DNA from: Isurus oxyrinchus
Lineage: Eukaryota
Length of the DNA: 64,000 bases
Direction: 5' to 3'
NCBI GenBank assembly: GCA_026770705.1
Contig: JANJGN010000009.1
Coordinates: 163,928,001-163,992,000, forward strand
Shown: piece by piece, positions 11,234-60,549 of the stretch
How positions within the stretch are numbered: the first letter of the stretch is position 1
Layout: each line of letters begins with the position of its first letter
Program-made: the position numbers and the translations under genes
Notes under the pieces: generated by a model
Database searches by the model: none
Told to the model about the DNA's origin: nothing
Seen by the model: only the letters and a program-made list of their open reading frames with translations

Positions 11234-11264
<31 letters not shown>

Positions 11265-16672: not shown

Positions 16673-19600
16673 GTGAGTGACAGCCAGACCTGGATATTCC
16701 AATAATCTGAGTTGGTTTAACTCTCGTGCGCTGGTTATACAGCAGATGTTTAAATATTTGGAGACATGCAAAGGCACAAAAGAGGTCTTGGGCACAGTGG
16801 GTTGTGTCTCTGTATCTGAGCCAGAAGCTCTGTGTTTGAGTCCCACTTCAGTTCTTGTTGAGAATGGAAGGCGCGTTCTAACCAGGCCCAACAGGTTGAT
16901 TATCAACCTGAAAATCTTCCAACAGACCGAAGGCTGGTGGGAAGAGGGTTTGAGATCCCAGTGCAACATGTTTGATGTGGAGTGGTGCCGCTCATTCTGT
17001 TGCCTCCGGAGGTTGTGACCTGTTTCAGGGAAAACAAGCTTTGGAAAGCAAAAGTAAACATGTGCTTTGTCTGCCGCATCCGTCTCTAGATGTGGGAAGT
17101 CTCCTAAGTCTAAAGGCACAAATTAGTCAGCAAAACCAAATGAATAATAATTGTGAAATATATTATTACCCTGTGAATTTACTATCACACCATGGGAATA
17201 GTTAACAAATAAACTGAACTGCATTATTAATTATGAATGATAAGTAAAGGAGAATTCAATTTTCAGAAATCTATGCAAGCAACATTTTGAAAATGAAAAC
17301 CTGTTTTAATTGGTAATTTTCAATATAATCTGATGTCCAGTATACACTGAAAACTGCAGCGGTAATAATCCCACAAATAAAACATGTCCCAAGTTGGCGA
17401 ATATTTCTGTTTTTTAAAGTACAGTTGATGAAATATTGTGTTATGAGGCTCTCTCAGTGACACTGTTCCTCACTGGTAGATGGTTGGTCTACATCACTCT
17501 TCTCATAAGTAGCCTTTTCTTGTTCATTCTTTAACTTTAAGAAACTTGATTTTCCTCATCACTCAGTATTGCCACCTCTCCATCATTTTCAATGAATCTA
17601 TTTTATAACACACAATGTTAAACTCCCAGCCCCATCTGCTCTAAGCCACTACTTTAACTTCCGCAAAATATTTTGTGCCTCTAGCTTATCAATTTTATGC
17701 AGAATACTTGATGTACTTATGGACAGGAAACTGAATCATGTTTCTGTCGGTTTGGCAATCTTCTTCTTTTCAATCCTTCCTCTTTCTGATCTGATCTCTT
17801 TCCCATTTGCTTTTCAACTGTAACTTTTCCTGTATCTTTTTCCTTTTCTTCACTTCTCTCTAGCCATTTAATTATTTTCAATCTCTCTTTTGTTATTTTA
17901 GTGCAAACTCTTTCTCCACAGCATGAGTTTCTCTCCCAGCAAGGCCATTGGTCTCATGAACGTTCAAGTCAAGGCATCCAAATCCCTACCTCAGGAATCC
18001 ATCCATCCTTCAAGGCCACCTATCACACAACCTCTCAAACCTTCAAGGCCTTCAAATCCTACCTATGGACATCCCTAACTCATTCAAGATCTGAACACCC
18101 CCTCCTGCAAGGACCCAAGCATCCCCCGCACCCCACCCACCTCAGATCAGAGCAGGGAACTGTCGGCTCCTGTGACCCCCTCCACACTGCTCCCCAACCA
18201 ACTGCAAATCAGGCCTGTCAATCAGACTGGTTTCTGGAACCTCTTGATGATGTCATACGCAGTCTGGGGTTAAACCCTACAGTATGGGGCAGAACCTCAA
18301 TTTCCAGGTTCCCCACACTCTACCAACCCCTGCCAATAAGTCAAGAAAATGCCCCAAATATCTCCCAAATAAATCATTGTCTGAGACGCGCTTTGGAACA
18401 CAGTGAGGCTCTGATAAGTGTCTATATGAATGATTACTCTCATCACAAACTTGATGGAATTTAACTCATTAAAATGCATCTGTTTGAATTAAGCAGTTAT
18501 TTCCAGTTCAGTTTCTCAAATGTTGTCTCCTCAGTTTCAGGTGCATTGTGGGCAAAAAAAGAAGTAACAGGAGTTGTGGGAAGAGCGATCACAATAGAAT
18601 GTCACTATGATGCACGTTACAAGTCACATATAAAATATTGGTGTTGCGGCTGGAGTCGCCAGTGTAATATTTTAGTATTGAAAAATCAGCAAAATGGAAG
18701 AATATCGATCACAGATAACAAGGCAACAGGAATATTTATTGTTACTATGGTGGATCTTCACTCAAGAGATACAGGATGGTACAGCTGTGGTATTGACAAA
18801 CCTGGCCTCCTCGATTCAATGTTTGCTGTGTGGCTACAAATATCTTACGGTACATTTCTTACTGATTTTCTTTATTATTCTCAACTGAAATGTCTGCTCA
18901 ATGTTTTATCTGAGAGGAAACATGACAGCTCCGATATCCCGAGGCTCCACAGCAATGCAGAGACTTAAAGGTAAAGGGCAGAGGTCGGGAAATCCAACTC
19001 ATGTTACCCAAACCCAATTCATGGCCTGTCAAACATGTCAGAGTTGAACTTTACAAGTGAACTAAACGGAAATTGAGAAGTTGTTTTGATGGTAAAAGAA
19101 GCCTCTTTATTAATTGTTGAGACATTGGGCTGGATATTCAGCCTCAAAGCGGGTAGGGGCAATTCGGAAAATTCCCCGCTCGGCCTTGGAAGAAAGTGCC
19201 CACAAAGGTGGGATTTCCATTGCTGGGAGCTGTGCCCAGGCTGCAGTCTGGCCAGCCACACCAGGAAGAAATGCAGAGGCAGCCACAGGGACTGCCGGCT
19301 GCGGAGACGGGCTGTTTCAAAGGCCCCTCCTTAATGCCCTTGGACTTTGTAACAGCTAAACTCAAAACACAAAGGCCCTTCACCCCTCACCCCCCACAGC
19401 CCACAAAGAGGGTGGGTATAAGGGGAAAATTTGTCATGAGAGTTCTTGGAGGTGGGTGGAAGTGTACAGCTTGAAGTCAGGAGCATGATGGATTATAAGG
19501 CGTGGGTAAAGGGACATAGGGGGCATTAACGGCCAAACGTGATGGATGAGGATGTGACTTGACATAGGGGGCATGAGATGGACCTTTTGAACTTAGCTCT

Positions 19601-22600
19601 TAAAAGGTCCCCTCATGCAAACCAGTGTTTACAGCTCCTCTGAGGGGCTTTGGACTACGACTCATTCAAAACCTGGCCCGAGTCCATGAAAATTGCAGAG
19701 GAGTAGGACGTGTCTGTCTCCACAATGGAGGCAGCCAGGTTGGAGTGTAAAAAACAAAAATACAAACAAAAAACTGCGGATGCTGGAAATCCAAAACAAA
19801 AAGTAAGAAATACCTGGAAAATCTCAGCAGGTCTGGCAGCATCGGCGGAGAAGAGCACAGTTGATGTTTCGAGTCCTGATGACCCTTCAACAGAACTAAG
19901 TGAAAAGAAGAGAGGGGTGAAATATAAGCTTGTCTAAGGGGTGGGGGTGGGGGTGCGGGTGGATAGAGAAGTGGGGAGGTGGTTGTTGGGACAAGCAAGC
20001 AGTGATAGGAGGAGATAACCAAAAGATGTCACAGACAAAAGAACAAAGAGGTGTTGAAGGTGGTGATATTATCTAAAAGAATGTGCTAATTAAGAACGTA
20101 TAGCAAGACAAGCAAGGTACAGATAGGTCATGTGGGGGTGGGGTGAAATAAGACTAAAAGGGCATAAAATGTATAGATAAATGATCAGTGGAATACATTA
20201 AAAATATTGCAAATAGGTGGGAAAAGAAAAATCTATATAAATTATTGGAAAAAAGAAAAAGGATGGGGAAGAAATGGAAAGGGGGTGGGAATGGAGGAGG
20301 GAGTTCAAGATCTAAAATTGTTGATCTCAATATTCAGTCCAGAAGGCTGTAAAGTGCCTAGTCGGAAGATGAGGTGTTGTTCCTCCAGTTTGCGTTGAGC
20401 TTCACTGGAACATTGCAGCAGGCCAAGGAACAGACATGTGGGCAAGAGAGCAGGGTGGAGTGTTGAAATGGCAAGCGACAGGGAGGTTTGGGTCATTCTT
20501 GCGGACAGACCGCAGGTGTTCTGCAAAACAATCACCCAGTCTGCGTTTGGTCTTTCCAATGTAGAGGAAACTGCATTGGGAGCAACGAATGCAGTAGACT
20601 AAGTTGGGGGAAATGCAAGCGAAATGCTGCTTCACTTGAAAGGAATGTTTGGGCCCTTGGACGGTGAGGAGAGAGGAATTGAAGGGGCAGGTGTTGCATC
20701 TTTTGCGTGGGCATGGGGAGTTGCCATAGGTGGGGGTTGAGGAGTAGAGGGTGATGGAGGAGTGGACCAGAGTGTCCCAGAGGGAACGATCCCTATGGAA
20801 TGCCACCGGGGTGGTGAAGGGAAGATGTGTTTGGTGGTGGCTTCATGCTGGAGTTGGCGGAAATGGTGGAGGATGATCCTTTGAATGCGGAGGCTGGTGG
20901 GGTGATAAGTGAGGACAAGGGGGACCTTATCATGTTTCTGGGAGGGAGGAGAAGGCGTGAGGGTGGATGCGCGGTAGATGGGCCGGACACGGTTGAGAGC
21001 CCTGTCAACGACCGTGGGTGGAAAACCTCAGTTAAGGAAGAAGGAGGACATGTCAGAGGAACTGTTTTTGAAGGTAGCATCATTGGAACAGATGCGACGA
21101 AGGCGAAGGAACTGAGAGAATGGGATGGAGTCCTTACAGGAAGCGGGGTGTGAGGAGCTGTAGTCGAGGTAGCTGTGGGAGTCGGTGGGTTTGTAATGGA
21201 TATTGGTGGACAGTCTATCACCAGAGATTGAGACACAGAGGTCAAGGAAGGGAAGGGAAGTGTCAGAGATGGACCATTTGAAAATGATGGAGGGGTGGAG
21301 ATTGGAAGCAAAATTAATAAATTTTTCCAGGTCCAAACGAGAGCATGAAGCAGCACCGAAGTAATCATCAATGTACCAGAGAAAGAGTTGTGGGAGTGGG
21401 CCGGAATAGGACTGGAACAAGGAATGTTCCACATACCCCATAAAGGGACAGGGGCTCATGTGGGTACCCTTAGTCACACCTTTTATTTGGAGGAAGTGAG
21501 AGGAGTTAAAGGAGAAATTGTTCAGTGTGAGAACAAGTTCAGCCAGACGGAGGAGAGTAGTGGTGGATGGGGATTGTTCGGGCCTCTGTTCGAGGAAAAA
21601 GCTAAGGGCCCTCAGACCATCCTGGTGGGGGATGGAGGTGTAGAGGGATTGGATGTCCATGGTGAAGAGGAAACAGTTGGGGGCAGGGAACTGGAAATTG
21701 TTGATGTGACGTAAGGTGTCAGAGGAATCACGGATGTAGGTGGGAAGGGACTGGACAAGGGCAGAGAAAAAGGATTCAAGATAACGAGAAATGAGTTCCG
21801 TGGGGCAGGAACAGGCTGACACGATCAGTCTGCCGGGACAGTTCTGTTTGTGGATTTTGGGTAGGAGGTAGAAGCGGGCCGTCCGAGGTTGGGCGACTAT
21901 CAGGTTGGAAGCTGTGGGAGGAAGATCCCCAGAGGGGATGAGGTCAGTGACAGTCCTGGAAACAATGGCTTGATGTTCAGTGATGGGGTCATGGTCCATG
22001 GAGAGGTCGGAGGAAGTGTCTGCGAATTGACGCTCAGCCTCTGTGAGGTAGAGGCCAGTGCGCCAGACAACAACAGCACCACCCTTGACAGCGGGTTTGA
22101 TGACAATGTTGGGGTTGGATCTGAGGGAACGGAGTGCAGTAAGTCACAAAACAACTGTTTGCTGAAATGCTAAACAAAGATAAATATTGAGATAAAAGCA
22201 AAGAACTGCGGATGCTGGAAATGCAAACCAAAGACAGAAATAGAAATATCTGGAAAAACTCAGCAGGTCTGGCAGCATCGGTGGAGAAGAGCACAGTTGA
22301 TGTTTCGAGTCCTCATGACCCTTCAACAGAACTAAGTAACAATAGGAAAGGGGTGAAATATAAGCTGGTTTAAGAGGAAGGTGGGTGCGTTGTTGGGACA
22401 AGAAGCCAGTAATAGGTGGAGATAACCAAAAGATGTCACAGACAAAAGAACAAAGAGGTGTTGAAGGTGGTGATATTTTCTAAAGGAATGTGCTAATTAA
22501 GGGTAGAAAGCAGGACAAACAAGGTACAGATAGACCTAGTGGGGGTGGGGTGGGGTGAAGGAATACTAAAAATTCTAAAAATTAGAGATTAACAGTGGAT

Positions 22601-25600
22601 GGAAATACATTTAAAAATAATGGAAATAGGCGGGAAAAGAAAACTCTATATAAACTATTGGAAAAAAACAAAAAGTGGAGGAAGAAACGGAAAGGGGATG
22701 GAGATGGCGGTTGGGGCCAGGGAACTGGAAATTGTTGATGTGACGTAAGGTGTCAGAGGAATCACGGATGTAGGTGGGAAGGGACTGGACAAGGGGAGAG
22801 CGAAGGGAGTCAAGATAATGAGAATTGAGTTCCGTGGGGCAGGAAGAGGCTGACACGATCAGTCTGCCGGGACAGTCCTGTTTGTGGATTTTGGGTAGGA
22901 GGTAGAAGCGGGCCGTCCGAGGTTGGGAGACTATCAGGTTGGAAGCTGTGGGAGGAAGATCTCCAGAGGAGATGAGGTCAGTGACAGATCTGGAAGCAAT
23001 GGCTTGATGTTCAGTGGTGGGGTCATGGTCCAGGGAGAGGTAGGAGGAAGTGTCTGCGAGTTGACGCTCAGCCTCCACAAGGTAGAGGTCAGTGCGCCAG
23101 ACAACAACTGCACCACCCTTGTCAGCGGGTTTGATGGCAATGTTGGGGTTAGGCCTGAGAGAATGGAGTGCAGTATGTTCAGAGAGAGACAGGTTAGAAT
23201 GGGTGAGAGGAGCAGAGAAATTGAGACGACTAATGTCACGCCGACAGTTCTCAATGAAAAGATCAAGAGAAGGTAAGAATCCAGAGGGAGGGGTCCAGGT
23301 GGAGGGAGAATATTGGAGGTGGGTAAAAGGATCCGTTGAATGGGGAGAGGACTCCTGCCCAAAGAAGTGAGCCCGGAGACGAAGACGGTGGAAGAAGAGT
23401 TCAGCATCATGCCGAGCCCGAAATTCATTGAGGTGAGGACGTAAGGGTATGAAACTAAGTCCTTTGCTGAGCACTGAACGTTCAGCATCAGAGAGGGGAA
23501 GGTCAGGGTGTATAGTGAATACCCGACCGGGGCTGGGATTGGAAGATGGGGTGGGGACAGAGGGACAGGCAGGGTTGGAGGGTCCTGGATGTGTGTTGGT
23601 ATCACTGAGTTGTTGCAGCTTGCGTTCCTTAGCACTTGAGAGAAAGAGAAAAGGTTTCTTGTTGAGGCGACGGATGAGACGAAGAATAGAATGAAACTGG
23701 GGGCACGGGCAGCTTTGGAAAGGGGTACGGCGATGCTGCTGGAGGGAGAGGTCGAATGTGTTCATATGGCAGCGCATGGCACTGAGTGTGGATCTCAGAA
23801 TGCAACGGGAACAGTATTCCGAGGAATGTTGTATGTCCCAGAGATACCTGTAATCCTGGGTTGGTTCGAATCCGATGGAATTTCAGTTGAGATCCACATG
23901 GGGTAAGTCGGAGACGGAGACAGTCACTGAGAAAGGAAATATGGCTGTGAAAGCGGGTTTTAGTAAACACCTTGTCAAACACCAGGAGAGAAATGGAAAG
24001 CAATGAAGGTAAATAAGGCAAAAGAGAGATATGAAAATCCTGACGGAGAGTAGTACAAAACTTCTTTAAGGTAGGGATGTCTTGAAGAGAAGTGGCAGTC
24101 AATTAAACACGGATAAAAGCAAAAAACTGCGGATGCTGGAAATTCAAAACAAAAACAGAAACATAAATAGCTGGAAAAACTCAGCAGGTCTGGCAGCATC
24201 AGCGGAAAGAGCACAGTTGATGTTTCGAGTCCTCATGACCCATCAACAGAACTAAGTAAAAATAGGAGAGGGGTGAAATATAAGCTGGTCTAAGGGGTGG
24301 GGGTGGGTGGTGGTGGAGGGAGAAGTTGTTGGGACAAGCAAGCAGTGATAGGAGGAGATAACCAAAAGATGTCACAGACAAATGAACAAAGAGGTGTTGA
24401 AGGTGGTGATATTATCCAAAAGATTGTGCTAATTAAGGATGGGTAGCAGGACAAGCAAGGTATATGGTGGCATCATGCTGCAGTTGGAGGCGGAAATGGC
24501 GGAGAATGATCCTTTAGTGCGGAGGCTGGTGGAGTGATAAGTGAGGACAAGGGAGACCTCTTCATGTTTCTGGGAGACTTGCTGCCTTCTTCCAGTGAAG
24601 CTCAATGCAAACCGGAGGAACAGCACGTCATCTTCCGACTAGGCACTTTAGAGCCATTGGGACTGAATATTAAGTTCAACAATTTTAGATCATAAACTCC
24701 CTCCTCCATCCCCACCCCCTTTCTGTTTCTTCTCCCTCCTTTTTCCTTTTTCCAATACTTTATATAGATTTTTCTTTTCCCACCTATTTCCATTATTTTT
24801 AATGTATTGCACCGATCATTTATCTATACCTTTTAAGCCCTTTAAGTCTTATTTCACCCCACCCCCACTAGAGCTATCTGTACCTTGATTGTCCTGCTAT
24901 CCATTCTTAATTAGCACATTCTTTTAGATGATGTCACCACATTCAACACCTCTTTGTTCTTTTGTCTGTGACATCTTTGGGTTATCGCCTCCTATCACTG
25001 CTTGCTTGTCCCAACAACTACCGCCGACTTCTCTCTCCACCGCCCCCCCCGCCCCCCGACCCATTAGACCAGCTTATATTTCACCCCTTTCCTATTTTTA
25101 CTTCGTTCTGTTGAAGGGTCATAAGGACTCTAAATGTCAACTGTGCTCTTCTCTGCCGATGCTGCCAGACCTGCTGAGTTTTTCCAGGTTGGGGAGTTCT
25201 GGGTGTGGCTTTTGAATGATCCAGCCTGTATCCTTTAAAGCTGCTCCCAAAATCACACAACCCAGGAACGCAGTTGGGAATCCCAGAATTAGGACACACC
25301 CGCCATTTTTAAAGGGCTCCTGAATCAACCCAAGTTGGTGAAATCCAGGCCGTCACTTTGGTCTGAAGGCTGCACAAAGCACAGGGTAGAGGTCCTGGAC
25401 TGAGACACCTGCCTTTATCTTGTACAGAAAGTGTTCACATGTGAGTGACATGAACATTGCTCATCAAAACAAGGAGCGATAGGCAGGGAGACATTCTTTG
25501 GAGTTTATTGACAATAATGAACAGTATGTACAAGTGATTAACACCCGTGCCCAGGACGTGCAACTGGCCTAAATAGCCAAGTGGTTATGGTACTGGGTTT

Positions 25601-28600
25601 GTAACCCCAAGATCAGGAATTCAAATCTCACAATGGCAAAATATGAAACAATGTAACTTGATCTGAATAGGAACAGATGGAAATGTGTTTGTACTCAAAA
25701 GAGTTACATTTCCTCAACTCTCGAGGCCTTCCGTGCTCAGTGGGGACTGGGGTGCTTTATTGACCCCTTTTAGCACTTTTTGGTTTAAAGTTGTAAGTTT
25801 CCTTTAAACTTCGTTCTTGGTTTTACAGCTGACCTAAATTAGGGGCTGTCCCTTATTTATCCTAATTTTGTAAATTTAGTTTAATTGTTTTGACTCTATA
25901 AGAGTTACATCTCCTCAACCCCCGTAATATGAGCCGCCTCGGGGACATGTTCTCTGTGCCATTTGGCACAGCAAAGAGGAGCTTTTTGTACGGACTGCTG
26001 CTGCACATCTTCCATTTTCTCGCCCTTCTCCGCCGCCTGGATATGCCCTGGCATGCCTTGTTGCCTTCCGGCAGCGGAGGCCCCCGATGGGAGGCCCTCT
26101 GAGGAGGTGTCCTCCCCCTTTCTATCGGGGACCTGGGTTCGAGGGTGTTGCATGCAGCAGTCCCCTATAATAGGAGAATTCATAGGTTCACGGACTCCCA
26201 AGACACATGCCCTTTTCGTGGTCTTGTGGAGTCCGTGGACCATGCATACATAGGGTGTGGTAGGTTGCACTCCCTTTTCAGTTACTTGATGAACCTTTTG
26301 TTAATGTTTTGTTTGCACTTCAGCCCCACGCTCCTGATCTATGGACACCCGGTGCGGAAGGGGGTCGGAAAGGAGGAGGACCTCCTCGTGAACCTGCTCC
26401 TGGGCCTGGCCAAGTTGGCCATTAACAGGTCCAGGCAGCAGGCGATCGAAGGGGGAGTCCCGCCCAATTATTTATCCCTCTTCCGCGGCTACGGTCGCAG
26501 CCGGATGTCCCTGGAAAGGGAGCATGCGGTGTCTGCCGGCACTCTCGAACCCTTCCGTGCTCGGTGGGCACCGCGGGGACTGGGGTGTTTTGTTGACCTC
26601 TTTTATCACATTTTGGTTTAAAGTTGTAAGTTTCCTTCAAACTTTGTTCTTGGTTTTACAGCTGACCTGAATTAGGGGCTGTGCCTGATTTATCCCAATT
26701 TTGTTAATTTAGTTTAATTGCTTTGACTCTATAAGAGTTACATCTCCTCAACTCTCGAGACCTTCTGTGCTCGATGGGTGACCACGGGGGTTGGGGTGCT
26801 TTATCCAGCCTCTTAATCACATTTTGGTTTGATGTTGTAAGTTTCCTTTAAATCCTGTCTTTGGTTTTGCAGTGACCCTAACTTAGGGGCTGCGTTTTAT
26901 TTTGTTCCTCATTTTGTTAATTTAGTTTATTTGTTTGGCTTTAAAAGAGCTACATCTTCTCAACTTTCCTAATCCTCCCGCTACATCTTGGTGCTCCGCA
27001 GACATCCAGAGTGGAAGTAAAGACAGTCTGCTGACTGCTATGCTCTGTCTGTGATAACTTTGGCGGGCGTCCTCTGGAGGCCTGAGGCCTGGAGGGCCCC
27101 GGCTTCCTTTCGAGGTCCTGCTGTGTGGCATTACCACCCTCCTTGGCCTGTGGACCTGGAGCTGTCAAGGTCACAGTAAGAGGGGAGTTACCAGGATGAA
27201 TGGCCCCGGAGGGTACACATGTTGATCCTTCTCGCTATTGGCTGAATTAGCGAGCAGCAGGGGTAGCTGAAGTGAGATTGAGCTGCCCGCACCCCTCTCT
27301 CATACACACTGTCAGGGGCCAACTATACATCAGCAATGGAGTTCAGCCCCACAGCAGTGTAGGAACGGTGCCCTGGACCAACATCTCCAAGGCACCTACG
27401 ATCCTACCAGTGTTGACCTTGGTGCATTGACATGCCAGCGCTATCACCTCAGAGTGCAGGTGGATGGATTCCTCCATATTAACTGAAAATTTTATTTAAA
27501 AAGAGAGAAGGTCACCATCTAATCCTTTATTAACTGTGTTTAATTGTATGCAGTGGTAGCATTAAACAGATGTCTTCAGGTCTGGGCCTTGTACACACTG
27601 TCTCCTGGGAGTTCTGACCAGCTACCCTGCTGTCTTCAGGGAGATCTGGCCAACCATCCTGCTGTGTTCTGGGAGATCTAAGCAGCTACCCCCTCACATA
27701 GGCTTCAGTATTCCCTTAAATGTGTTTCTTCTCTTTCATCTCTCTTTGTTGCAACCAGTCTGAAAAGAAATGCTTTTCTTCAAAGGATTGATTAAATCAA
27801 TCTTTACCTCTTAGACTTGTAAAAACAAACTTACTCTATGTTTATGTCACGTCCTTACACCTTTTTACAACCTGCATATATCTCCCTTTGAACTAAAACA
27901 ACACAATTCAAACTATTTCTGTTATTGCTTCATGTACAAGTCTGTTGTAGTTCTTTTTTGTTTATTAACATATCAAAACCACTTCAAATTGTTGACTTTT
28001 GACCCTATCCACTGATGAGGCAGTCCATGTCATGGAACCATAACCTTAAATCTGGAGATAGGCTCGTCAGGGATGTCAGGAATCACTTCTTCACGCAAAG
28101 TATAGCGGAAATCAGGAACACTCTCCTCAAAAAAGCTCTTGAACTTAAATGAAAATTTCAAAACTGATTGACAGATTTTATCTGGTAGCAATATTCGGGT
28201 TATGGGACCCCGGTAGGTAAATGGACAGAAGATACTGGTCAGTTGGGATTTAATTGAATTGTGGAACAGGCTGAAGGGGCTGCATGTCCGAATCCCTTTT
28301 CCATGTTCTGGAGCCCCAGTTAATTTTTCAGTGGTCTGGGCCTTGTGAGTAACAATGTGCTGTGAAACAAGCTCACAAACAGTTAGCATTTCAAAGAGAC
28401 ACTTTCCAATCACCAGGCAAACTGTGACCTGTGTTGTTTCAGAGTACAGTTTGTGACAGTGAAAGCAGTGAAGGCCTGCCAAACCTCATTAAAATCAAGT
28501 TCTGTCGAAGGGTCATGAGGACTCGAAACGTCAACTCTTTTCTTCTCCATCGATGCTGCCAGACCTGCTGAGTTTTTCCAGGTAATTCTGTTTTTGTTTT

Positions 28601-43578: not shown

Positions 43579-44295
43579 GGGCAGGATTTTCCTGTGGGTT
43601 TCAGCATCCCAATGTCGGGATCAAATGGAGCTCCCAAGCTGGCACTCATCCCGAGTGAGATGGAGGTGCAATCTTCCCAGAGGCAGCCTGCTGATTTGCT
43701 GCCTCTGTGTTTGCTGTTCTATTAAGGGTGGTCGGCGTCTCCTGGTGCTCCAGGCTCAGTCAAAGGGCTGCCAGTTCTAGAGCCTCAGTAACTCTACTGG
43801 GAGAGGGAGGTGCTACTGAGGCATTTCTGGCCCGTGAGGGTATCTCAATGTGGAGGCACCCTCGCAGGTGAAAATTTAAAGGATGATTTCAGAGGGACTA
43901 AGCTGGTGGGCTCCTTGGAGAGGAGGGGAGACCCTTCTGGTGGAAGTGTCTGGGCCGCAGGTGCAGTCTTTCCTTGGGCCTCCAGCTCGGATGAATCCCC
44001 ATCTTGCCAGCCGGGAGGCTGCCTCATCGAGTTGGGGTCACCTGCGCATGGTGAGGGTCCGCTCCGTTACCGACAAAATGCTGGTAGTGCCACAAAATCA
44101 CCCGTAATTGGGGCCTTAACTATGTAATTGCCTCCCTGCCTCGGCTCTGTGGGCAGCTGTCCCTTGTCTCAGTCTGTCCCTGGGGAAACTTCCTGGCAGC
44201 AGGAATGCATCGCGTGTTGCCCTGATGTGCCATTCCCTATTTTCCTGGCTCCTCGGCCTCCAAGACTATCATAACAAGGCTGGAAAATTCAGTCC
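43579..44295. mobile_element. Harbinger-type MITE
   Basis: gggcaggattttcc / ggaaaattcagtcc termini, AAA on both sides. Confidence 0.7.
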
Positions 44296-48345: not shown

Positions 48346-48597
48346 TGAGATGCGGAGAAACTTCTTTAGCCAGAGAGTGGTGAATCTATGGAATTCATTG
48401 CCACAGAAGGCTGTGGAGGCCAGGTCATTGAGCGTATTTAAGATGGAGGTAGATAGGTTCTTGATTGGTAAGGGGATCAAAGGTTACAGGGAGAAGGCGG
48501 GAGAATGGGGCTGAGAAACTTATCAGCCATGATTGAATGGCGGAGTAGGCTCGATGGGTCGAATGGCCTAATTTCTGCTCCTTTGTCTTATTGTCTT
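48346..48597 (+). mobile_element. CR1 3' end
   Basis: gagatgcggagaaacttctttagccagagagtgg..gaatggcctaatttctgctcc. Confidence 0.85.
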
Positions 48598-50469
48598 CCG
48601 GACCGACATATTGACGAAATCATTCTCAATAACTTGTCCTGTACATGTCATTCCTATGACCTGTCAACGGCCTATTAAGGTCATTAAAAAACTGATTGAG
48701 GTTATTAATGAAACTGCCCGTCCATGAAACCTCGGGCGGGATGATGTTTCATGAGGGATTTAAAAATCTAAGAATATTTCAAAATAAAAGTTATGGACAT
48801 GTCCCAACTCTTGTGTTGGTGTCACATGGGGGGACATTGTAGTGAAATTTATTTCTCAGCTTTATTTAAAGTTTAACATCTGAGCCGATCTCCCTGAGGC
48901 AGCACTTTTCCTCAGGGAGATCTGTGCACTCCTTCGCACACTCCTGGCTGAGGGAATCCCCACCGCACCCCCCCTCACCCCGCCACACAGCGCATAGGGA
49001 GCGCATTGCACTTCCTGGCGGACATCACGCTGGGCGGGCCTTAATTGGCCCATCCACGTAAAATGGCAGTGAGCCCCGACCAGGGGTGCCAATCAGGAAC
49101 CTGCCCACTGTGCCCACTCCCACACATCCACCTGGCGGGAGGAAAATGTTGCCCCTAGGAATTTTTAGTTTGCATCAAACAGAAAGCATGTAAATATTCA
49201 ACCCGACAAAAAACTTATTTTATTCATTCTTGGGTTGTGGGGGCCATTGGCAAGACCCTGTTGTCCATCCCTAACTGTCCTTGAGAAGATGGTGGTGAGC
49301 TGCCTTCTTGAGCCGCTGCTGTCCTTGTTAGGGTGTTAGGTGTTGGGGAGAGAGGTCGGATTACTGACCCAGTGAAAATGAAGGAACAGCATTATGGTTT
49401 CTGGTCAGGATACTGAGTAACTTGGAGAGGAACTTGCACATGGTGGTGTTCCCACACATCTGTTATCTTTATTCTACTAGATGGTAGAATTCAAGTGTTT
49501 GGAAGGTGCTGTCGAAGGAGCCTTGGTGAATTGCTATTACCTCAGACTACTTTTAAAGCATTTAAATTAGACAAAGGCTAGCTCCATTTACAATGTAATA
49601 AACTCGCATTCAGCTAATACTCAGGCCTATAACAAAAACCTATTTTCAGTTTTAATGATTTGGACACTCTCTAAGTTCTCACTTTATTTGTTTGAAGATA
49701 CAACTATCAAGTGGCACTCACTTAGCAATAACCAGGTGATTGACGCTTAGTTTGGGTTCCGCCAGGATCATTCAGCTCTGACCTCAAATATGGACAAAAG
49801 AGCTGAACTCCAGAGGTAAAGCGAGTGTGACTGCCCTTGCCATCAAGGCAGCATTTGACCAATCATGGCATCATGAAGCCCCAGCAAAACTGAAGTCATT
49901 GGGGATCAGGGGGAAAACTCTCCAATGGTTGGAGTCATACCGAGCACAAAGGAAGATGTTTGTGGTTGTTGGAGGTCAATCATCTCAGTTCCAGAGCATC
50001 ACTGCTGGAGTTTCTCAGGATAGTGTCCTAGGCCCAACCACCTTTAGCTGCTTCACAATGACCTACCTTCTGCAATAAGGTCAGATGTGGGGATGTTCGC
50101 TGATGATTGCACATTCAGCACCATTCACGACATCTCAGGTACTGAAGCAGTCCATGTCCAAATGCAGTAGGACCTGGACAATATCCAGGCTTGGGCTGAC
50201 AAGTGAAAAGTAACATTCGCACCACACAAGTGCCAGGCAATGGCCATCCCCAACAAGAGAGAACCTTACCATTGCCCCTTGACATTTAATAGCATTACCA
50301 TCGCTGAATCCCCCACTATCAGCCTGGGGGGGTTACTAGAAACTGAACTGGACTAGCCATATAAATACTGTGGCTGTAAGAGCAGGTCAAAGACAGGGAA
50401 TCCTGCAGCAAGTAACTCACCTGACTCCCCCAAAGCCTGTCCACCATCTACAAGGCACAAGTCAAGGAG

Positions 50470-50880
50470 GCTCAGGTGGACGTGGTGACTGAGAAGGTTG
50501 AGGTGGAGGCAGTGGCTGAGGAGGTTGAGGTGGAGGCAGTGACTGAGGAGGTTGAGGTGGGGGAAGTGACTGAGGAGGCTGAGGTGGAGGCGGTGACTGA
50601 GGAGGCTGAGGTGGAGGCAGTGGCTGAGGAGGTTGAGGTGGAGGCAGTGACTGAGGAGGTTGAGGTGGAGGTGGTGACTGAGGAGGCTGAGGTGGAGGTG
50701 GTGACTGAGGAGGCTGAGGAGGAGGTGGTGACTGAGGAAGCTGAGGTGGAGGCCGTGGCTGAGGAGCTTCAGGTGGAGGCCGTGGCTGAGGAGGCTGAGG
50801 AGGAGGTGGTGACTGAGGAGGCTGAGGTGGAAGCAGTGACTGAGGAGACTGAGGTGGAGGTGGTGACTGAGGAGGCTGAG
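50470..50880 (+). repeat. 27-bp G-rich minisatellite, second array
   Basis: Same unit as 8880-9460. Confidence 0.95.
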
Positions 50881-51489
50881 TTGGAGAGTAAGAGAGAATG
50901 GGAGAGGTGATGAGAGAGAGTGGGAGAGAGAGAGAGAAAGAGAGACCAAGATGGAAAGGTGGGAGAGTGATAGAGGGCAGGAAACTGGAGACAGAGAGAG
51001 AGACAGTGGGAAAGGGGCAGAAAGAGAGTGGGAACACGGTGGGCAGAGAGAGAGAGAAAGTGGGAAAGGGTCAGGGTGGGAAGGCCAGGCAGGGGGATCA
51101 GGTCAGGGACACAGGCCCATGCAAGCACATTCCTGGCAGGCCTGAGGGGGAGGGGATGTATCCAGGCTGGTTTGAGGATTGGGTGGTCCTGACTCCCTCC
51201 AGGGGAAGGGGCTGTAGAAGAGAATTGAAAGTGAGAGGGGGGTGAGCCGCAGACTGCTCCGTTGGTCTCACCAGCACTTTCACCCCACTCCTCCAGTGAG
51301 GGGACTCGCACGTTTTCTGGCAGAGGCAGCAACAGCCTCAGAGAAGGTGGCAACTGAGGAGGACACGGCAATGGCTGAAGTGGAGGCACAGAAATGGAGG
51401 TGGAGGCTGCAGGTCTGGCAATACGGCAGAGGAGGAGTTGGCAAGGGCAGCGGAAGCAGAGGTGGTGGTGGAGTTGGCAATAGCAGTGG

Positions 51490-51870
51490 AGTTGACTGAG
51501 GAAGAGGCAAGAGTGGAGGAGGTTGAGGTGGAGGTGATGACTGAGGAGGCTGAGGTGGAGTCATTGGCTGAGGAGGCTGAGGTGGAGTCAGTGACTGAGG
51601 AGGTTGAGGTGGAGGCAGTGACTGAGAAGGTTGAGGTGGAGTCATTGGCTGAGGAGGCTGAGGTGGAGGTGGTGACTGAGGAGGTTGAGGTGGAGGCAGT
51701 GACTGAGGACGTTGAGGTGGAGGCAGTAACTGAGGAGGTTGAGGTGGAGGCAGTGACTGAGTAGGTTGAGGTGGAGGCAGTGACTGAGGAGGCTGAGGTG
51801 GAGGCAGTGACTGAGGAGGCTGAGGTGGAGGCAGTGACTGAGGAGGCTGAGGTGGAGGTGGTTGCCGAGG
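51490..51870 (+). repeat. 27-bp G-rich minisatellite, third array (counterpart of 8880-9460)
   Basis: Same unit; downstream flank near-identical to that of the first array. Confidence 0.95.
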
Positions 51871-53829
51871 CGATGGAGGTAGTGAATGTGGGGGTGGAGG
51901 AGGAGACATCAGCAGCGGCAGCAGCAGAGACAGTGACTGAGGCTGAGGAGGGGGAGGCAGCGGCTGTGACAGTGACAGAGGGAGAAGCAGCGAAGGCGGC
52001 AGCAGCAAAGGCTGAGGCCACAGTGAGGGAGGCTGTGGAGAGGGAGGTGGAGGTGGGGCAGAGGCAGCGAGGAGACGGTACGAGACCAGGAGCAGCAACA
52101 AAACCTGCCTTGTGGTTTGTGAGGCTCAGGGCAATGGCGACTGAGAGTTGATATCTTCCATGTGCCATGTGTGTGTCTCCGAGTCAGCGCACCGGACCAC
52201 ACTGCTTCTGCCCGATTAGGGCGCTTCAGTGGAGTCCGACACCAGTCCAGTGCCACCCAGCTCCCATTCCCGAGGACAGGTGATGGAACCTGCCCAGTGC
52301 CAGGATGAGCTGCTTGGTAAGATCGGGAGGTGGGAAGTAGAGAAGGCAGCCGACCAGGAAAAGCTGGAGGATATCTCCAGGATTACTGACTGTCTCCAAG
52401 AAGAAACTCTTGTAGCCTTCAGGCAGGGTATATATATGTTTATATAGCTGCAATTTAAAGTTACCTGCCACATCCCTTTTAACACTTTCTAATGCAGCAT
52501 CGCTCTGATCAGAATCAGATTTATTGGGGTTGTGCAAATGTCTCCCCAGCCTCTGATATAACAATAAAAAGCTGCTTTTTCCTTTCCAGTTGCAGTAAGA
52601 GGACTGTCCCAGCCTCTCACTGTGACAGGGCAGCCCAGGACTATGTCTCTCAGTGCAACACCCAGGAACACACACAGTGCAGCCCCCACATTGATTGTTC
52701 CAGTTGGTGGAGGGGCGGAAAGTGTGCATGTGGGAAGATATTGATTCTCACAACATTTCCATGGCTTTAACTCAGATTATTCTGAGTGTTTTGCCTGGAG
52801 TCAATTACAAGCAGCGTAGACAATGTCTGTGTTTTAATTGTGTCTGGCTGTCCTCGTTTTTCACAAGAAAATATGTGCAGATTTTGTTCAACTTTTATTC
52901 TGAGTGTTTTTTCTGAGTTTATGGAGATGTAACCTCATATCAATTTAATTCAGAGCACCTTCATACACTCGCACACACCCACACACACACACAAATATCC
53001 TCAATCACCCACACACCCACACACATACACACACACACAAACATGGGAATGCGTGATTTCAGTTCATTATTGACATTCTTGATCCTCATTTGTCCCTGCA
53101 ATATATAAGTGCACCAGCAATAAACACCAACAGATAAACGGGAAAAGTAACCAGTTTGGACGAGTACTACTTACATCACCAGTATTTCTGGCTGTTCCTA
53201 CTGGGCGACCGGTAATACCGGTGATATTGACAGTTTTACTGGTCCTACCTAGTTCAGAACTGGTCTTCATTTACCAGTTTGGAATTAGGATCTACTGGTG
53301 CCGGTATTACAGGGACTTCTTTCTGGGAATGACAATAAATGAATGTGCTTCTCAACTCACTGCATTGTCAACCTGAGGTCCATTGCTTTAGACATGTAAG
53401 AGTGAAGACTTTACCCATGTGGAACAGATTGCCTTTAGAGGCCTGAGTTTCTTTCCGGTTTCAATGGTTGAAAACTTTTTGTTGTGTACAGAATGGTGAG
53501 GGTGGATGTTCAATCCCAAATGAACATAATTCAGTTTCAGCGCAATTCATTAACTCCACAAATAATTTAACAATTGATGACCAACGTAAATAGAATTAAA
53601 CTGAAAAAAATGTTTTCAAAGCTGTTGCACCTTGTCATGTAGATGGTGGCTTGAAACCACAAGAAAAATGTGCTGCTATTGTTAGGATTGAGGTGTGACA
53701 GAAAGCTGTGAATGTACAACAGGTGTTAGTCACAAAATGAAGGGTTGTGTTTGCAAATGGGAGAAGAAGAAGAATTGCATTGTTACAGGGCAAACACGTT
53801 GGCAGTAAGTGTTTGAAGGTTAAGCAGCT

Positions 53830-56800
53830 TCAGCTCAGAACAGACACTGAGACACATCAGGGAGAAGGAAAGTTACCTGGATTCTTTGTGCCAGGAGGCA
53901 ATCACAGCTCTTAGGACAGGGTGAGTGTGACTGCGAGTGCGGCAGGTAAAGGGACCCAGAGGGCAGGAGCGCAGGAGCCTCAGCCTTTACAATTGTTCTA
54001 CAGGTCTGAACTTTTCTCAGCTTGTTTGGACAAGAGCAGCGGGTGAGCAGGGGGGATGAGCGAACTGACCATGGCACCATGGCACAGGAAGTCATCCAAG
54101 TGGGGGGAGCAAACAGGAATGTAGCGGTAGTGAGGGATAGTATAGTCAGAGGGATTGACTCTGTTCTCTGCAGCAAACAGCGTGAGTCCACACGAGCAAG
54201 TTGCCTGCCCGGTGCCAGGGTGTGGGACGTTGGCTCGGGGCTTGGGAGGAACTTGCATTGGGAGGGGGAGCACCCAGTCATCGTGGTCCATGTAAGCACC
54301 AACGACATAGGCAGCACAGAGAAGGTGGTTCTGCACAATCAGTATGAGGAATGAGGCATCAGATTAAGAAGCAGAACCACAAAGGTCATAACCGATGGAT
54401 TATTACCTGAGCCATGTGCAAATTGCCACAGGACAAATCAGACTCAGGAGGTGAATGTGGCTCAAAGGCTGGTGTGGAAGAAGTGGGTTCTGGTTTGTAG
54501 GGCACAAGAACCAGTACTGGGGAAAGTGGGATCTGTACCATTGGGATGGTCTACACCTGAACCGTGCTGGGACCAGTGTTCTTGCAAGCCACATAACTAG
54601 GGAGGTAGAGAGGGTTTTAAACTAAATAGTGGACAACAGATCATATTCGGGATAATGTTGTAATTCAAGGAGCAGAAACAAGTCAAAAGATAAAGGTATT
54701 ATTAGGAAAAATGAAAAACAGACACTGACAAGGGGGGATAGAGAGAACAAATCTAATAGTAAATCAACAGATGAAACTAAAAGTTTTTAAAAGCATAAAA
54801 GGATAAAACTAAAAGCTCTGTATCTGAATGCACGTAGCATTCAAAACAAAACAGATGAACTGAGAGCGCACATAGAAATAAATAATTACAATTTGATAGC
54901 CATTACGGAGACTTGGCTGCAGGAGGACATGGATTGGGATGTGAATATTGAAGGGTACAGGGTACTTAGGAAAGACAGGAAGCGAGGAAAAGGTGTAGCG
55001 GTGGCTCTGTTAGTGAATGATGGTATTAGTACAAGAGAGGAAGAAATAATTGGAGCTTGTCAGAAAGTCATGGTGATAATCATGGGAGACTTTAATTTAC
55101 ATATAGAATGGAAAAGTCAGATGGGCAAAGATAGCCTAACAGAGGATTACATTGAATGTTTTCAAGATAGTTTCTGAGAACGGCATGTTCTGGATTCAGC
55201 CAGACAGCAGGCTATACTAGACCTGCTATTGTGCAATGAGATGGGAGGAATTAACAATCTCACCATGAAGATGCCCCTAGGAAACAGTGAACATAATAGG
55301 ATGAATTTTACATTCAGTTTGAAGGAGAGAGGAGTGGGTCTGCGTCTAAGGCGGGGATTTTTGGGCCCTGCTGCTGGTGGGACTCGCTGTGGGGGAGGCA
55401 GTTCCCCAGTCAGAAGCCCCACTGACTTGCGACAGGACAGGAAGGGCCGGCGAGCGGGTGTGGAAAATCCCACTGTAAGTTTTTAAACTTTAATAAGGGC
55501 AATTATAAGGACATGAAAGCTGGGATGGCTAAAGTGAATTGGCAAAATAGGTTAAGGGACAGGTCAATCAAGATGCAATGGCTCATATTTAAGGGGATAT
55601 TTCAGAATGCACATTCCAACGAGTAAGAAAAAGTCTAAGTGACGGACACACCATCCGTGGTTAACTTGAATGTTTAAACATAGTATCAACCTCGAAGGAA
55701 AAGTATATAATTCTGCAAAGAGAGGTGGCAGGTCAGAAGATTGGACAGAATAAAAGGAACAGAAAAGAATGACTAACAGACTAATAAGAAGGGAAAATTT
55801 AGTCTATGAGAGAATATAACAGGAATATAACAACAGATAGGAAGAGTCTTTATAAGCACGTAAAAAAGAAAAGAGTGAACAAAGTGTGTGCTGGTCCTAT
55901 AGAAGGTGAGCCTGGAGAATTGATAATGGAAAACAAGGAGATGGCAGATGAATTGAACAGGCATTTTGCACCAGTCATATTGAAAATGTTAGAAGCTATT
56001 ATTAAAGAAATTATAGCAGGACACTTGGATAAGGTCATGGTCACCAGGCAGAATCAACATGGTTTTGTGAAAGGGAAATCTGTTTATCCAGTTTTTTGGA
56101 GTTCTTTGAGGAAGTAACATGTGCTGTGGATAAAGTGGAACTGGTGGATGTACTGTACTGAGGTTTCTAGAAGGCGTTTCATAAGTTATTGTGGAAAATA
56201 AAAGCTCACGGTATAGGGGGTCACATACTGGTATGGATAGAAAACTGTCTGGCTAACAAGAAACAGAGTAGGCATGAATGAGTCTTTTTTAGTTTGGCAA
56301 GATATAAGAGTGTTGTGGCACAGGGATCAGTGCTGGGACCTCAACAGTTTGCACTTAATATCAACGACTTGGATGAAGGGTTTGAAGGGATGGTTTCTGA
56401 ATTTGCTGATGACACAAAGATAGGTAGAAAGTAAGTTGTGAGGGGGACATAAGGAGGCTACAAAAAGATATAGATAGGTTTAGACATTGGACAAAGATCT
56501 GGAAAATGGAGTATAATGTGGGAAAATGTAAAATTGTCCATTTTGGCAGGAAGAATAAAAGAGAAGCATGTTATCTTAATGGTGAGAGATTGCAGAGCTC
56601 TGAGGTGCAGAGGGATCTGGCTGTCCTAGTGCATGAATCACAAAAGGTTAGTATGGAGATACCGCAAGTAATTAGGAAAGCTGATAGAATGATTTCATTT
56701 ATTGTGAAGGAGATTGAATTCAAAAGTAGGGAAGTTATTCTTCATCTGCATAGGGCACGAGTGAGACTACATTTGGAGGACTCTGTACAGTATTGGTCAC

Positions 56801-57150
56801 AATATTTAAGGAAGGATGAAATGCATTGGAAGCAGTTCAGAGAAGGTTTACCAGGCTAATACCAGGAATGGGTGGATTGTCTAATGAGGAAAGGTTGGAC
56901 AGACTAGGCTTCTATCTGCTGGAGTTTAGAAGAGTAAGAAGCGAATTGATTGAAACATATAAGTTCCTGAGGGGTCTTGACAGGGTGAGTGCAGAGAGGA
57001 TGTTTCCTCTTGTGGGAAAATGAGGGGTCACCAATTTAGAACAGAGATTAGGTGATTTTTTTGAACTCAGAGGCTCGTGAGTCTTTGGAAATCTCTTCCT
57101 GAAAAGGTGGTGAAGGGGAGGCTTCGAATATTTTTAAGGTAGAGGTGGAG
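53830..57150 (+). mobile_element. Duplicate of the CR1 LINE at 12115-15440
   Basis: Same internal deletions and same nested MITE. Confidence 0.93.
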
Positions 57151-58338
57151 TGGTACAAATCAGCAGTAACTTGTGGCAACTCACGATTCATTGGCTTTTT
57201 TCTTCATCGTCAAAAGTTGCTGATGATTTTCACATTAAAAGAGGTGTTTGTTGTTCATATCCCATTATATTTTCAGTACGTTCTAGCCCATTGTTATAGA
57301 GTTGATTTTCCAGGCAACTTTTCTGGGTGGAAACATTGAACTTTATTTACAAGACAGCAGCAGCAGCTACATGTGTGTATCTAACTCTATAACTAAAGGA
57401 CAATTCCCGTGGAGGTTCCCCATGCTGCAAATTGGTTGGTTTACACAGATCATGTTCTCTTACAACAAAGGATTATTCTTAATGTTACAGTCCTACATTG
57501 ATCAAAACTATAATTATTACATTCCTCACCCTTTACCTTTTCTGTACATTTGTATTTACAAGGATGTTGATCTCATAACATTAAAATACTTCCACAGGTC
57601 ATGAAATTATAAGCTTGGTCTTTCAAATGGTTCCATGTGGAACGTTTTAGTTTCATGACCTCAGATTCTCTGACAGGAACCACAGTCTCTGCAATAACAT
57701 CAGGTACCTCATTAGACACAGGCAGATCAGTGTCGTCCACTCCGACAGAGACATCGGGCATGACTATCCTTGGCTGTACAATTTTAACAGGAACAACAGG
57801 TTCAACAATGGCTACAGGTGGAAAATTATTTTGTGGGGTATCTCCATTCGTTTTAAATCAATCAGGAGCTTACCGGTGATCTACAAAGATTAGTAAATAA
57901 AACCAAAATATTAAGAAATCTCTGTATTCAATTTGACAACTAAATTTCAGAAATGAAAAAAATACTTCTGTTCCTGTGGGGTTTGTGGAAATTGGGAGGG
58001 GGTTCCTGTTCTAAATCACTTCACAATTCAGTATAAATACTAGCTCAGCTCATCATTATCCATATGTTCTAACTTTTTAACATTCTTGTTTTCAGGATTT
58101 TATATCCTTTCAATGAAAATTAGTTTAGTTCTTTTGTTAAATATAACTGACAGAAGTTCAAGTTCTCAGGGGTCAGATTTCATCAGCTGCCTTAATGTGG
58201 TTTCATGACCTGGCTTCCTGCTATCTTCTTCCTCATTTAAATTCCTTGTATCATTTATATTAGACAATTATTTCAACGTGAGAAACAAGAGCTGAGTGTC
58301 TGGAAACAAGTTCTGTCCTGATCTTTGTGAACAAAACG

Positions 58339-58375
58339 ATGTGGATTTTGATTCTCCTCATTAGTTCTCTGCCCG
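58339..58375 (+). CDS. Gene B exon 1, signal peptide (paralog of gene A)
   Basis: Identical to 16636-16672 including the gtgagt donor. Confidence 0.88.
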
Positions 58376-60234
58376 GTGAGTGACAGCCAGAGCTGGATGT
58401 TCCGATATTCTGAGTTGGTTTAACTCTCGTGCGCTGGTTATACAGGAGATGTTTAAATATTTGGAGACATGCAAAGGCACAAGAGAGGTCTTGGGCACAG
58501 TGGGTAGTGTCTCTGTATCTGAGCCAAAAGCTCTGTGTTTGAGTCCCACTTCTGTTCTTGTTGAGAATGGAAGGCGCGTTCTAACCAGGACCAACAGATT
58601 GATTATCAACCTGAAAATCTTCCAACAGACCGAAGGCTGGTGGTAAGAGGGTTTAAGATCCCAGTCCAACATGTTTGATGTGGAGTGGTGCCGCTCATTC
58701 TGTTGTCTCCGGAGGTTAGTGACCTGTTCCAGGGAAAACAAGCTTTGGAAAGCAAAAGTAAACATGTGCTTTGTCTGCCGCATCCGTCTCTAGATGTGGG
58801 AAGTCTCCTAAGTCTAAAGGCACAGAATAGTCAGCAAAACCAAATGAGTAATAATTGTGAAGTATTTTATTACCCTGTGAATTTACTATCACACCATGGG
58901 AATAGTTAACAAATAAACTGAACTGCATTATTAATTATGAATGATAAGTAAAGGAGAATTAAATTTTCAGAAAGCTATGCAAGCAACATTTTGAAAATGA
59001 AAACCTTTTTTAATTGGTAATTTTCAATATAATCTGATGTCCAGTATACACTGAAGACTGCAGCGGTAATAATCCCACAAATAAAACATGTCCCAAGTTG
59101 GCGAATATTTCTGTTTTTTAAAGTACATTTGATGAAATATTGTGTTATGAGGCTCTCTCAGTGACACTGTTCCTCACTGGTAGATGGTTGGTCTACATCA
59201 CTCTTCTCATAAGTAGCCTTTTCTTGTTCATTCTTTAACTTTAAGAAACTAGATTTTGCTCATCACTCAGTATTGCCACCTCTCCATCATTTTCGATGAA
59301 TCTATTTTATAACACACAATGTTAAACTCCCAGCCCCATCTGCTCTTAACCACCTCCCCAAAATAGTTTGTGCCTCTAGCTGATCAATTTTATGCAGAAT
59401 ACTTGATGTACTTATGGACAGGAAACTGAATCATGTTTCTGTCTGTTTGGCAATCTTCTTCTTTTCAATCCTTCCTCTTTCTGATCTGATCTCTTTCCCA
59501 TTCCCTTTTCATCTGTAACTTTCCCTGTATCTTTTTCCTTTTCTTCATTTCTCTCTAGCCATTTAATTATTTTCAATCTCTCTTTTGTTATTTTAGTGCA
59601 AACTCTTTCTCAACAGCATGAGTTTCTCTCCCAGCAAGGCCATTGGTCTCATGAACGTTCAAGTCAAGGCATCCAAATCCCTACCTCAGGAATCCATCCA
59701 TACTGTAAGGCCACCTATCACACAACCTCGCAAACCTTCAAGACCTTCAAATCCTACCTTTGGACATCCCTAACTCATTCAAGATCTGAACAACCCCTCC
59801 TGCAAGGACACAAACCTACCCCGCACCCCACCCACCTCAGATCAGAGCAGGGAACTGTCGGCTCCTGTGACCCCCTCCACACTGCTCCCCAGCCGACTGC
59901 AAATCAGGCCTGTCAGTCAGACTGGTTTCTGGCTGTGGAACCTCCTGATGATGTCAAACGCAGTCTAGGGTGAAACCCCAAAATATGAGGCAGAACCCCA
60001 ATTTCCAGGTTCCCTCACTCTACCAGCCCCTGCCAATATGTCAAGAAAATGTCCCAATTATCTCACGAGTATATCATTGTCTGAGACGTGCTTTGGAACA
60101 GAGTGAGGCTCTGATAAGTGTCTATATGAATGATTACTCTCATCACAAACTTGATGGAATTTAACTCATTAAAATGCATCTGTTTGAATTAAACAGTTAT
60201 TTCCTGTTCAATTCCTGAAATGTTGTCTCCTCAG

Positions 60235-60549
60235 TTTTAGGTGCATTGTGGGCAAAAGAGAGAGTAACAGGAGTTGTGGGAAGAGCGATCACAATAGAAT
60301 GTCACTATGATGCGTGGAGGTACAAGTCACATATAAAATATTGGTGTCGCGGCTGGACTCGCCAGTGTAATGTTGTAGCATCGACAAATTGGCCAAATGG
60401 AAGAATATCGATCACAGATAACAAGTCACAAGGATTATTTATTGTTACTATGGAGAATCTTCACTCAGGAGATACAGGATGGTACAGCTGTGGTATTGAA
60501 GCAACTGGCCACGATCCAATGTTTAATGTAAAGCTACAAATATCTTACG
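60235..60549 (+). CDS. Gene B exon 2, CD300/pIgR-type V domain; rest of gene lies beyond the window
   Basis: Open frame VLGALWAKERVTGVVGRAITIECHYDAWRYKSHIKYWCRGWTRQC..DTGWYSCGIEATGHDPMFNVKLQISY; same splice sites as gene A, offset 41,700 nt. Confidence 0.9.

Follow-up and report, generated by a model that had tools for sequence, protein, structure and literature searches.

The question raised by this locus is whether an exon that has diverged far more than the intron behind it must have been driven apart by selection. The window analyzed here, a 64,000-nucleotide (nt) stretch of the shark Isurus oxyrinchus (assembly GCA_026770705.1, contig JANJGN010000009.1, positions 163,928,001 to 163,992,000 of the forward strand), carries two tandem copies, A and B, of an immunoglobulin (Ig)-superfamily receptor gene whose second exon encodes a V domain. 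An earlier note, made from the letters of the DNA alone, took the genes for young duplicates and assigned the divergence of their V exons to strong diversifying selection. We hold with moderate confidence that two causes are combined: a mosaic history, produced by conversion or homogenization between two tandem genes of the modular domain immune-type receptor (MDIR) type, and diversifying selection on the loop codons of the V exon.

The descriptive part of the earlier note was accurate. In our codon alignment, the V exons show 36 nucleotide differences at 309 aligned sites, with 25 residues replaced, two single-codon indels and three codons with synonymous change only. This reproduces the counts made by eye (about 36 substitutions in about 312 nt, about 25 amino acid changes, two codon indels and about three synonymous-only codons) and upholds the reported excess of replacement over silent change. 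Exon 1 is identical between the genes, and the intron downstream of the V exon (18850-19380) has 12 differences in 531 nt (2.3%), within the 2-3% given earlier. Both V exons have an AG acceptor, a GT donor and phase-1 boundaries, and both match Pfam V-set (E = 1e-8 and 2e-10). The canonical framework that had been described as fixed (Cys22, Trp35 and Cys84) is conserved in both V domains, together with an extra Cys36-Cys43 pair. In RNA data (run X5, record 8), one contig passes from 16583-16671 straight into 18534-18849 and on for another 226 nt; because it spans the junction of exons 1 and 2, the splice is real and the A-type V exon is expressed.

The surroundings of the V exon tell a different story from the one assumed. 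A maximal-scoring-segment scan of the stitched 10,278-nt A-B alignment, with rates of 11% vs 2.8% and a permutation null (99% value, 15.4; permutation maximum, 18.3), returned three islands of high divergence and one borderline patch (Table 1), set in a background of 2.9-3.2% in the alignment profile. The first island takes in the final 338 nt of intron 1 and almost all of the V exon, and its intron part (18197-18534) differs at 28 of 335 sites (8.4%; p = 1.7e-5 vs background). The other two islands are non-coding, and the 11.5% divergence of the V exon equals the level of this unselected sequence. Since the V-exon block extends into the intron and the non-coding islands are equally diverged, the amount of exon divergence reflects mosaic history and not selection alone. 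The earlier reading presupposed an exon as young as its flanks (3%), with all of its excess selective; this is not supported, as the divergent block begins 338 nt inside intron 1 and non-coding islands reach 10-12%. The original comparison had covered the downstream intron only; divergence is raised in the 338 nt directly upstream, as it is in the exon.

The A-B pair is thus a mosaic of the sort that paralogues typically acquire through gene conversion or partial homogenization. The alternative offered in the earlier note, a conversion tract from a third paralogue limited to the exon, does not hold in that form either, for the tract extends into the intron and no matching donor was found: among annotated proteins, in limited searches seeded with two relatives, there was no near-identical donor paralogue, and the closest protein was 79-81% identical. 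The similar level of divergence across the islands would favor one older duplication, later mostly homogenized, over several imports from different donors. The idea of an ancient V lineage that merely escaped homogenization was rejected, as the silent divergence (four silent differences) is far too low for a deep split.

These observations bear on the original reading, in which the copies are young (~3%) duplicates and essentially all of the extra exon divergence arose by positive diversifying selection after the duplication. Several features would fit it. Third-position divergence in the exon (4.9%) and dS (6.4%) are not significantly above the 3% background (p = 0.39), the ratio of nonsynonymous differences to sites exceeds that background at p = 9e-11, the conserved framework stretches, ~140 nt in total, contain no A-B difference, and all nine changes in codons 46-53 fall at first or second positions and none at third. 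Protein selection, however, cannot lift 338 nt of adjacent intron to 8.4%, nor can it create non-coding islands of 11-12% elsewhere in the duplicate, and we consider this reading improbable.

Motifs shared with other species add to this. The C'-C'' motif of B recurs in Carcharodon, Chiloscyllium and Hemiscyllium proteins and its FG motif is of the family consensus type. The FG/G motif of A is found again in a protein of Carcharodon, whose identity to A (79%) and to B (81%) exceeds that of A to B (75%). Because such type-specific motifs are shared between species, part of the A/B difference either is older than the flanks suggest, predating a 3% split, or has been exchanged, which again counts against selection after a young duplication as the whole cause. 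Another part looks newly derived in A, whose C'-C'' motif has no close match; in a related species (run X6), only B-like letters were found at the 15 A/B sites listed, so the A states look recently derived, as expected if selection acted on young duplicates. A proposal that the Carcharodon protein is an A/B recombinant was dropped, since with three sequences mere closeness to the ancestor gives the same pattern.

Sequencing reads allowed the islands to be viewed outside the assembly; statements on read contigs rest on the best-supported contigs listed for each run. In a DNA run of the same species (X1), two contig types were present in the first island, with depths of 70.4 vs 71.6 over 18208-18402, and the A-type and B-type depths were 70.9 vs 69.6 over 18645-18691, where no third contig type appeared among those listed, a further point that a purely selective origin could claim. 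In intron 1 outside the island (17410-17649), the same run gave a single contig of double depth with B-like letters, from which it follows that the A/B differences there are not fixed, while those inside the island are. The letters at codons 8-9 of copy A in the window (18557-18562) are private, being absent both from the A-type sequence of X1 and from the X5 RNA contig. Copy A also has private letters at intron-1 sites 16743, 16780, 17123, 17554 and 17591, where all X1 and X5 depth is B-like. Private letters of this kind could reflect polymorphism, ongoing conversion between A and B, or an assembly slip in a run of A.

Whether selection has acted in addition was examined on two DNA sequences, on which all of the selection figures rest. 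The pairwise dN/dS is 2.25 by Nei-Gojobori (NG86; four synonymous differences at 65 sites and 32 nonsynonymous differences at 244 sites, dN 0.144, dS 0.064), 1.84 by LWL85 and 2.38 by maximum likelihood. Differences are distributed 17/14/5 over the three codon positions, so that third positions are under-hit (probability of five or fewer, 0.0076), and 17 of the 36 exon mismatches have a neighboring mismatch, whereas none of the 28 in the intron part of the first island has one. When the island intron and synonymous sites serve together as the neutral standard, replacement divergence is 1.7-fold higher (odds ratio 1.74, p = 0.042). A further comparison grouped codons by their entropy across 90 related V domains from other species, with A and B excluded to avoid circularity. 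At the 51 high-entropy codons, the proportion of replacement sites that differ (pN) is 0.219, vs 0.105 in the non-coding islands (p = 0.0006), and at the 52 low-entropy codons it is 0.042. Family entropy is 1.84 bits where A and B differ, vs 0.98 at the remaining sites (p = 4e-6), and the changes fall at the hypervariable positions of the family (BC, CC', C'-C'', DE and FG/G), which take in the loops named in the earlier note. Taken with the mosaic, these results from sequence comparison give moderate evidence that the loop codons have been under diversifying selection on top of the patchwork.

The same figures can be set against a history of exchange without positive selection, in which the V exon merely lies in an unconverted or imported tract of ~10% divergence and copy A is relaxed or decaying. 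The whole-exon pN of 13.1% is only about 1.2-fold the neutral level of the non-coding islands, and the 25 replaced codons are close to the ~24 that we roughly estimate for neutral change at 10.5%. What speaks against this history is the replacement excess at codons whose variability was defined independently, alongside constraint at the low-entropy codons. Furthermore, polarization by the 12 nearest V domains divides the changes about equally between the lineages (12 derived in A, 11 derived in B and four ambiguous), and not onto a decaying A. Relaxed constraint alone was rejected as the cause of the excess of the exon over its flanks, since relaxation would bring the rate no higher than neutral, and the framework is conserved.

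The state of gene A is relevant to the same question. Its splice sites, reading frames and immunoreceptor tyrosine-based inhibitory motifs (ITIMs) are intact and its V exon is found in a spliced transcript, all of which argues against decay. Copy A also has odd residues at family-conserved V sites that would suit a relaxed gene. An extra cysteine, Cys37 (18645-18647, TGC vs CGC in B), directly follows Cys36 at a position where none of the 90 related V domains has one, and Lys49 and Val72 replace residues that are Thr in 92% and Glu in 79% of the family, respectively. The C2 exon further along the gene (30105-30434) has Tyr at the conserved Cys of its relatives, so that the stalk Cys of gene A lacks its likely partner. 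These unusual cysteines could mean altered disulfide pairing or early decay. On balance, we regard exchange without positive selection as unlikely.

A number of points weigh against the combination of mosaic history and selection that we prefer. Taken alone, the pairwise dN/dS is not significant (Fisher p = 0.13), and third-position divergence and dS have intermediate values that suit the background as well as the islands. Copy A of the window has private letters at codons 8-9 that make up four of the 36 differences, and without them the ratio falls to roughly 1.5. Multi-nucleotide mutations, or micro-conversions from distant V exons that are homologous within the exon only, could mimic both the replacement excess and the adjacent double changes. 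The order of events may be either an old duplication later homogenized or a young duplication with imported patches, and the chance that a 315-nt exon falls within the ~12% of sequence that was not homogenized is not negligible. Of the strong diversifying selection originally claimed, what stands is a moderate signal at hypervariable codons; neither the pairwise test nor the near-neutral level of the exon as a whole bears out its strength.

In the combined account, the most likely course would begin with an older duplication that reached ~10-12% neutral divergence. The copies would then have been largely homogenized by gene conversion or unequal exchange, such that the alignable 10 kb is now 2.9% diverged over about nine tenths of its length, while the V-exon block would have been left, or kept, unconverted and at least three islands of 10-12% remained. 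Replacements at the family-variable positions have accumulated at about twice the neutral island rate, in an otherwise conserved framework, and these positions appear to surround a ligand pocket of the CD300lf type. Diversifying selection on ligand specificity thus probably acts, and it would explain the pattern of change but not its amount. We also entertain, more tentatively, a stronger version in which the A and B V types are actively kept apart as a balanced two-specificity system, possibly with several gene copies of each, with surroundings that are repeatedly homogenized and positive selection focused on the CD300lf-like pocket that lies between the CC' loop and that of CDR3 (third complementarity-determining region). 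If true, an elasmobranch innate receptor would be engaged in a host-pathogen or ligand arms race, at a distance of ~450 million years from the cases in mammals.

Structural comparison gives the pocket its place in this account. The AlphaFold model of the A V domain has a pLDDT (predicted local distance difference test) of 93.3, and its best Foldseek match is mouse CD300lf (template-modeling score 0.91-0.94, root-mean-square deviation 1.2-1.3 A, 38% identity); by sequence, the nearest solved proteins are pIgR (E = 5e-40, summed over domains) and CLM-1 (phmmer E = 1e-16). The pocket of mouse CD300lf binds lipids and a virus. An extra disulfide forms the floor of its cleft together with the side chains of Tyr, Trp and Met, and CDR3 binds a calcium ion (PMC6166816). 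Residues matching the cleft, as read off sequence motifs, are conserved in A, B and the family. Differences between A and B lie around the cleft, at residues 37 and 40 (C-end/CC') and at seven residues and one indel within 87-94 (CDR3 and the start of G), with further differences in C'-C'', BC, DE and G. Read from the sequences, the G-x-D-x-M spacing is the same in B as in CD300lf, and in A it is longer by one residue. On the strand map of the model, 19 of the 27 differing sites are in BC, C-end/CC', C', C'-C'', F-end/FG and G; of the remainder, A-A' and E-F, on the far side of the domain, hold five and DE/E three. From what is known of the family, the two V domains would bind different ligands or ligand variants on the same signaling chassis.

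That chassis can be followed in gene A. Read exon by exon, it appears to be a complete inhibitory-type receptor gene, with a cytoplasmic tail holding two ITIMs (I-T-Y-A-A-V and V-I-Y-S-G-V), a motif like the immunoreceptor tyrosine-based switch motif (T-V-Y-A-N-V) and a fourth Y-x-x-V. The interval 34464-37236 holds one or more small cytoplasmic exons that could not be placed. By analogy with known receptors of this kind, gene A would signal inhibition through its phosphorylated ITIMs.

The comparison of A with B presupposes that they are separate loci. An assembly artefact, in which A and B are haplotypes of one locus placed in tandem and the differences are allelic polymorphism, might account for the equal depth of A-type and B-type contigs in X1, for the four of four reads of a second individual (X22) that are B-type over the diagnostic sites, and for a run of undetermined bases (10666-10928) near the start of copy A. 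That run has TG/CA-type simple repeats on either side, and copy B has ~180 nt in its place. Such an artefact is nevertheless very unlikely, as 41.7 kb of gap-free sequence, with the remainder of gene A in it, separates the copies, several transposable-element insertions on the kb scale set them apart, and the family is multi-copy in the reads of both species, with up to eight distinct contigs over intron 1 among those listed for the related species. The A-type and B-type contigs, at ~70 each, are five to six times as deep as the diverged long paralogue contigs (10-15) listed for the same run over 16550-19050, and the raw reads of the second individual are also deeper there than two loci would give. 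Each V type may represent several near-identical genes, and copy number from depth is ambiguous.

The window as a whole holds a tandem segmental duplication, with a core (11242-19711 vs 52962-61411) that is 95.4% identical over 8488 nt in a self-BLAST comparison. The pieces of copy A (9087-10380, 11242-19711, 25348-25565, 26755-27477 and 27474-27565) keep the order of copy B. Copy A is interrupted by later transposable elements at approximately 19712-25347 and 25566-26754, and copy B has its own insertion of ~1.4 kb (62399-63799). These copy-specific insertions, which comprise several related elements, some of them inverted, postdate the separation of the copies. Fragments of long interspersed nuclear element open reading frames (endonuclease and reverse transcriptase) lie 5' of both genes (12307-15097 and 54022-56859); since they are inside the duplicated unit, the element is older than the duplication or the homogenization. 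A minisatellite of 27 nt (nine codons) is found upstream of both copies (8633-9742 and 50353-52168), and its open reading frames, long and acidic on one strand and proline-rich on the other, are probably not genes. Intron 1 contains a transfer RNA-derived short interspersed nuclear element (16791-16916) whose word depth reaches the thousands in each DNA run from either species.

Table 1. Coordinates of the duplicated copies, the divergence islands and the exons of genes A and B (window positions)
Feature	Position	Strand	Divergence and scan score	Basis or remark
Copy A of segmental duplication	9087-27565	+		Self-BLAST, pieces collinear with copy B; extent is at least this
Copy B of segmental duplication	51496-63890	+		Self-BLAST; extends past window end; extent is at least this
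Borderline patch	16095-16210	+	15/116 = 12.9%, score 11.6	~430 nt upstream of exon 1; under 95% null value
Island 1	18197-18832	+	64 mismatches in 632 aligned nt = 10.1%, score 37.5	B counterpart 59892-60532
Island 2	19394-19620	+	28/227 = 12.3%, score 20.8	Non-coding, intron 2
Island 3	27248-27534	+	31/290 = 10.7%, score 19.6	Non-coding, inside DNA-transposon remnant in intron 2
Gene A exon 1	16636-16672	+		Start codon and 12-residue signal-peptide start; phase-1 donor GTGAGT
Gene A exon 2, A-type V domain (CD300/pIgR-type)	18535-18849	+		Pfam V-set, AlphaFold, Foldseek; transcribed
Gene A exon 3, C2-type Ig domain (FcRL/PECAM-like)	30105-30434	+		Phase 1 to 1; Pfam Ig_3/Ig_2, tblastn with relatives, AG/GT boundaries
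Gene A exon 4, Ser/Thr-rich stalk with conserved Cys	32761-32878	+		tblastn with relatives
Gene A exon 5, transmembrane segment without charged residue	34376-34464	+		tblastn with relatives
Gene A last exon, cytoplasmic tail and stop codon	37236-37547	+		tblastn with relatives
Gene B exon 1	58339-58375	+		Identical to gene A exon 1
Gene B exon 2, B-type V domain	60235-60549	+		Pfam V-set; remainder of gene B past window

On sequence grounds, both genes are assigned to the elasmobranch MDIR family. A profile search returned 2191 relatives, of which the close ones are all from elasmobranchs and are annotated as pIgR-like, CMRF35-like or FcRL-like, and 337 related V domains were collected from 172 elasmobranch proteins. 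Gene A has the modular ectodomain of MDIRs (CD300/pIgR-like and C2 domains) in its inhibitory, ITIM-bearing form, and the family is multigene here as well, with two copies in the window and several paralogue contigs in the reads. Relatives with a charged transmembrane segment occur in other elasmobranchs. The view of the locus as part of a germline-encoded innate Ig-superfamily receptor family of cartilaginous fish is well supported. To our knowledge, MDIRs have barely been studied and no ligand is known for them, and a search of the accessible literature found nothing on divergence islands or selection in MDIR V exons. The locus provides a clean natural pair, with the same regulatory and signaling parts and V domains that differ mainly around the pocket, in which differences in specificity are directly testable. 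It also carries a warning: gene copies trade sequence in patches, so that selection should not be concluded on the sole ground that an exon has diverged further than the intron behind it.

The nearest known system is that of the clearnose skate. MDIRs, as cited in PMC3031540, are relatives of CD300, TREM and pIgR and form a multigene family with both activating and inhibitory members. Gene A shares with the skate system the V domain (63% identical to that of MDIR2, P0170), the C2 domain, the transmembrane segment, the ITIM tail and the multigene setting, and differs in that the present locus is from a shark. Mammalian CD300 receptors, especially mouse CD300lf/CLM-1, share the V-domain fold, the second, C-C' disulfide (Cys36 and Cys43 in both copies) and ITIM signaling, and the Tyr, Trp, Asp and Met of the CD300lf pocket floor appear conserved in the shark V domains, as judged from sequence motifs and not from residue-level superposition. 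The CD300 ectodomain is a single V domain, whereas gene A adds an FcRL-like C2 domain. Gene conversion between the primate paralogues CD300A and CD300C has been reported (PMC12447643); there it keeps the ectodomains alike, whereas in the shark pair the V exon is the part that stays different. pIgR is the best sequence match among solved structures and has lent its name to the public annotation of relatives as 'pIgR-like', but it has two to five tandem V domains and no ITIM tail, in contrast to the single V domain, C2 domain and ITIM tail of gene A. KIR, LILR, SIRP and teleost NITR genes form tandem arrays with near-identical non-coding flanks, a variable ligand-binding domain and exchange between paralogues, and variable ligand-binding domains in near-identical tandem copies that exchange sequence are well known for KIR, LILR, NITR and MHC genes. 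KIR, LILR, SIRP and NITR are unrelated in sequence to the shark receptors beyond the Ig fold, and the likeness is drawn from general knowledge of these families. The pattern described here is ordinary for gene families of this kind, and the MDIR family is one that was already known.

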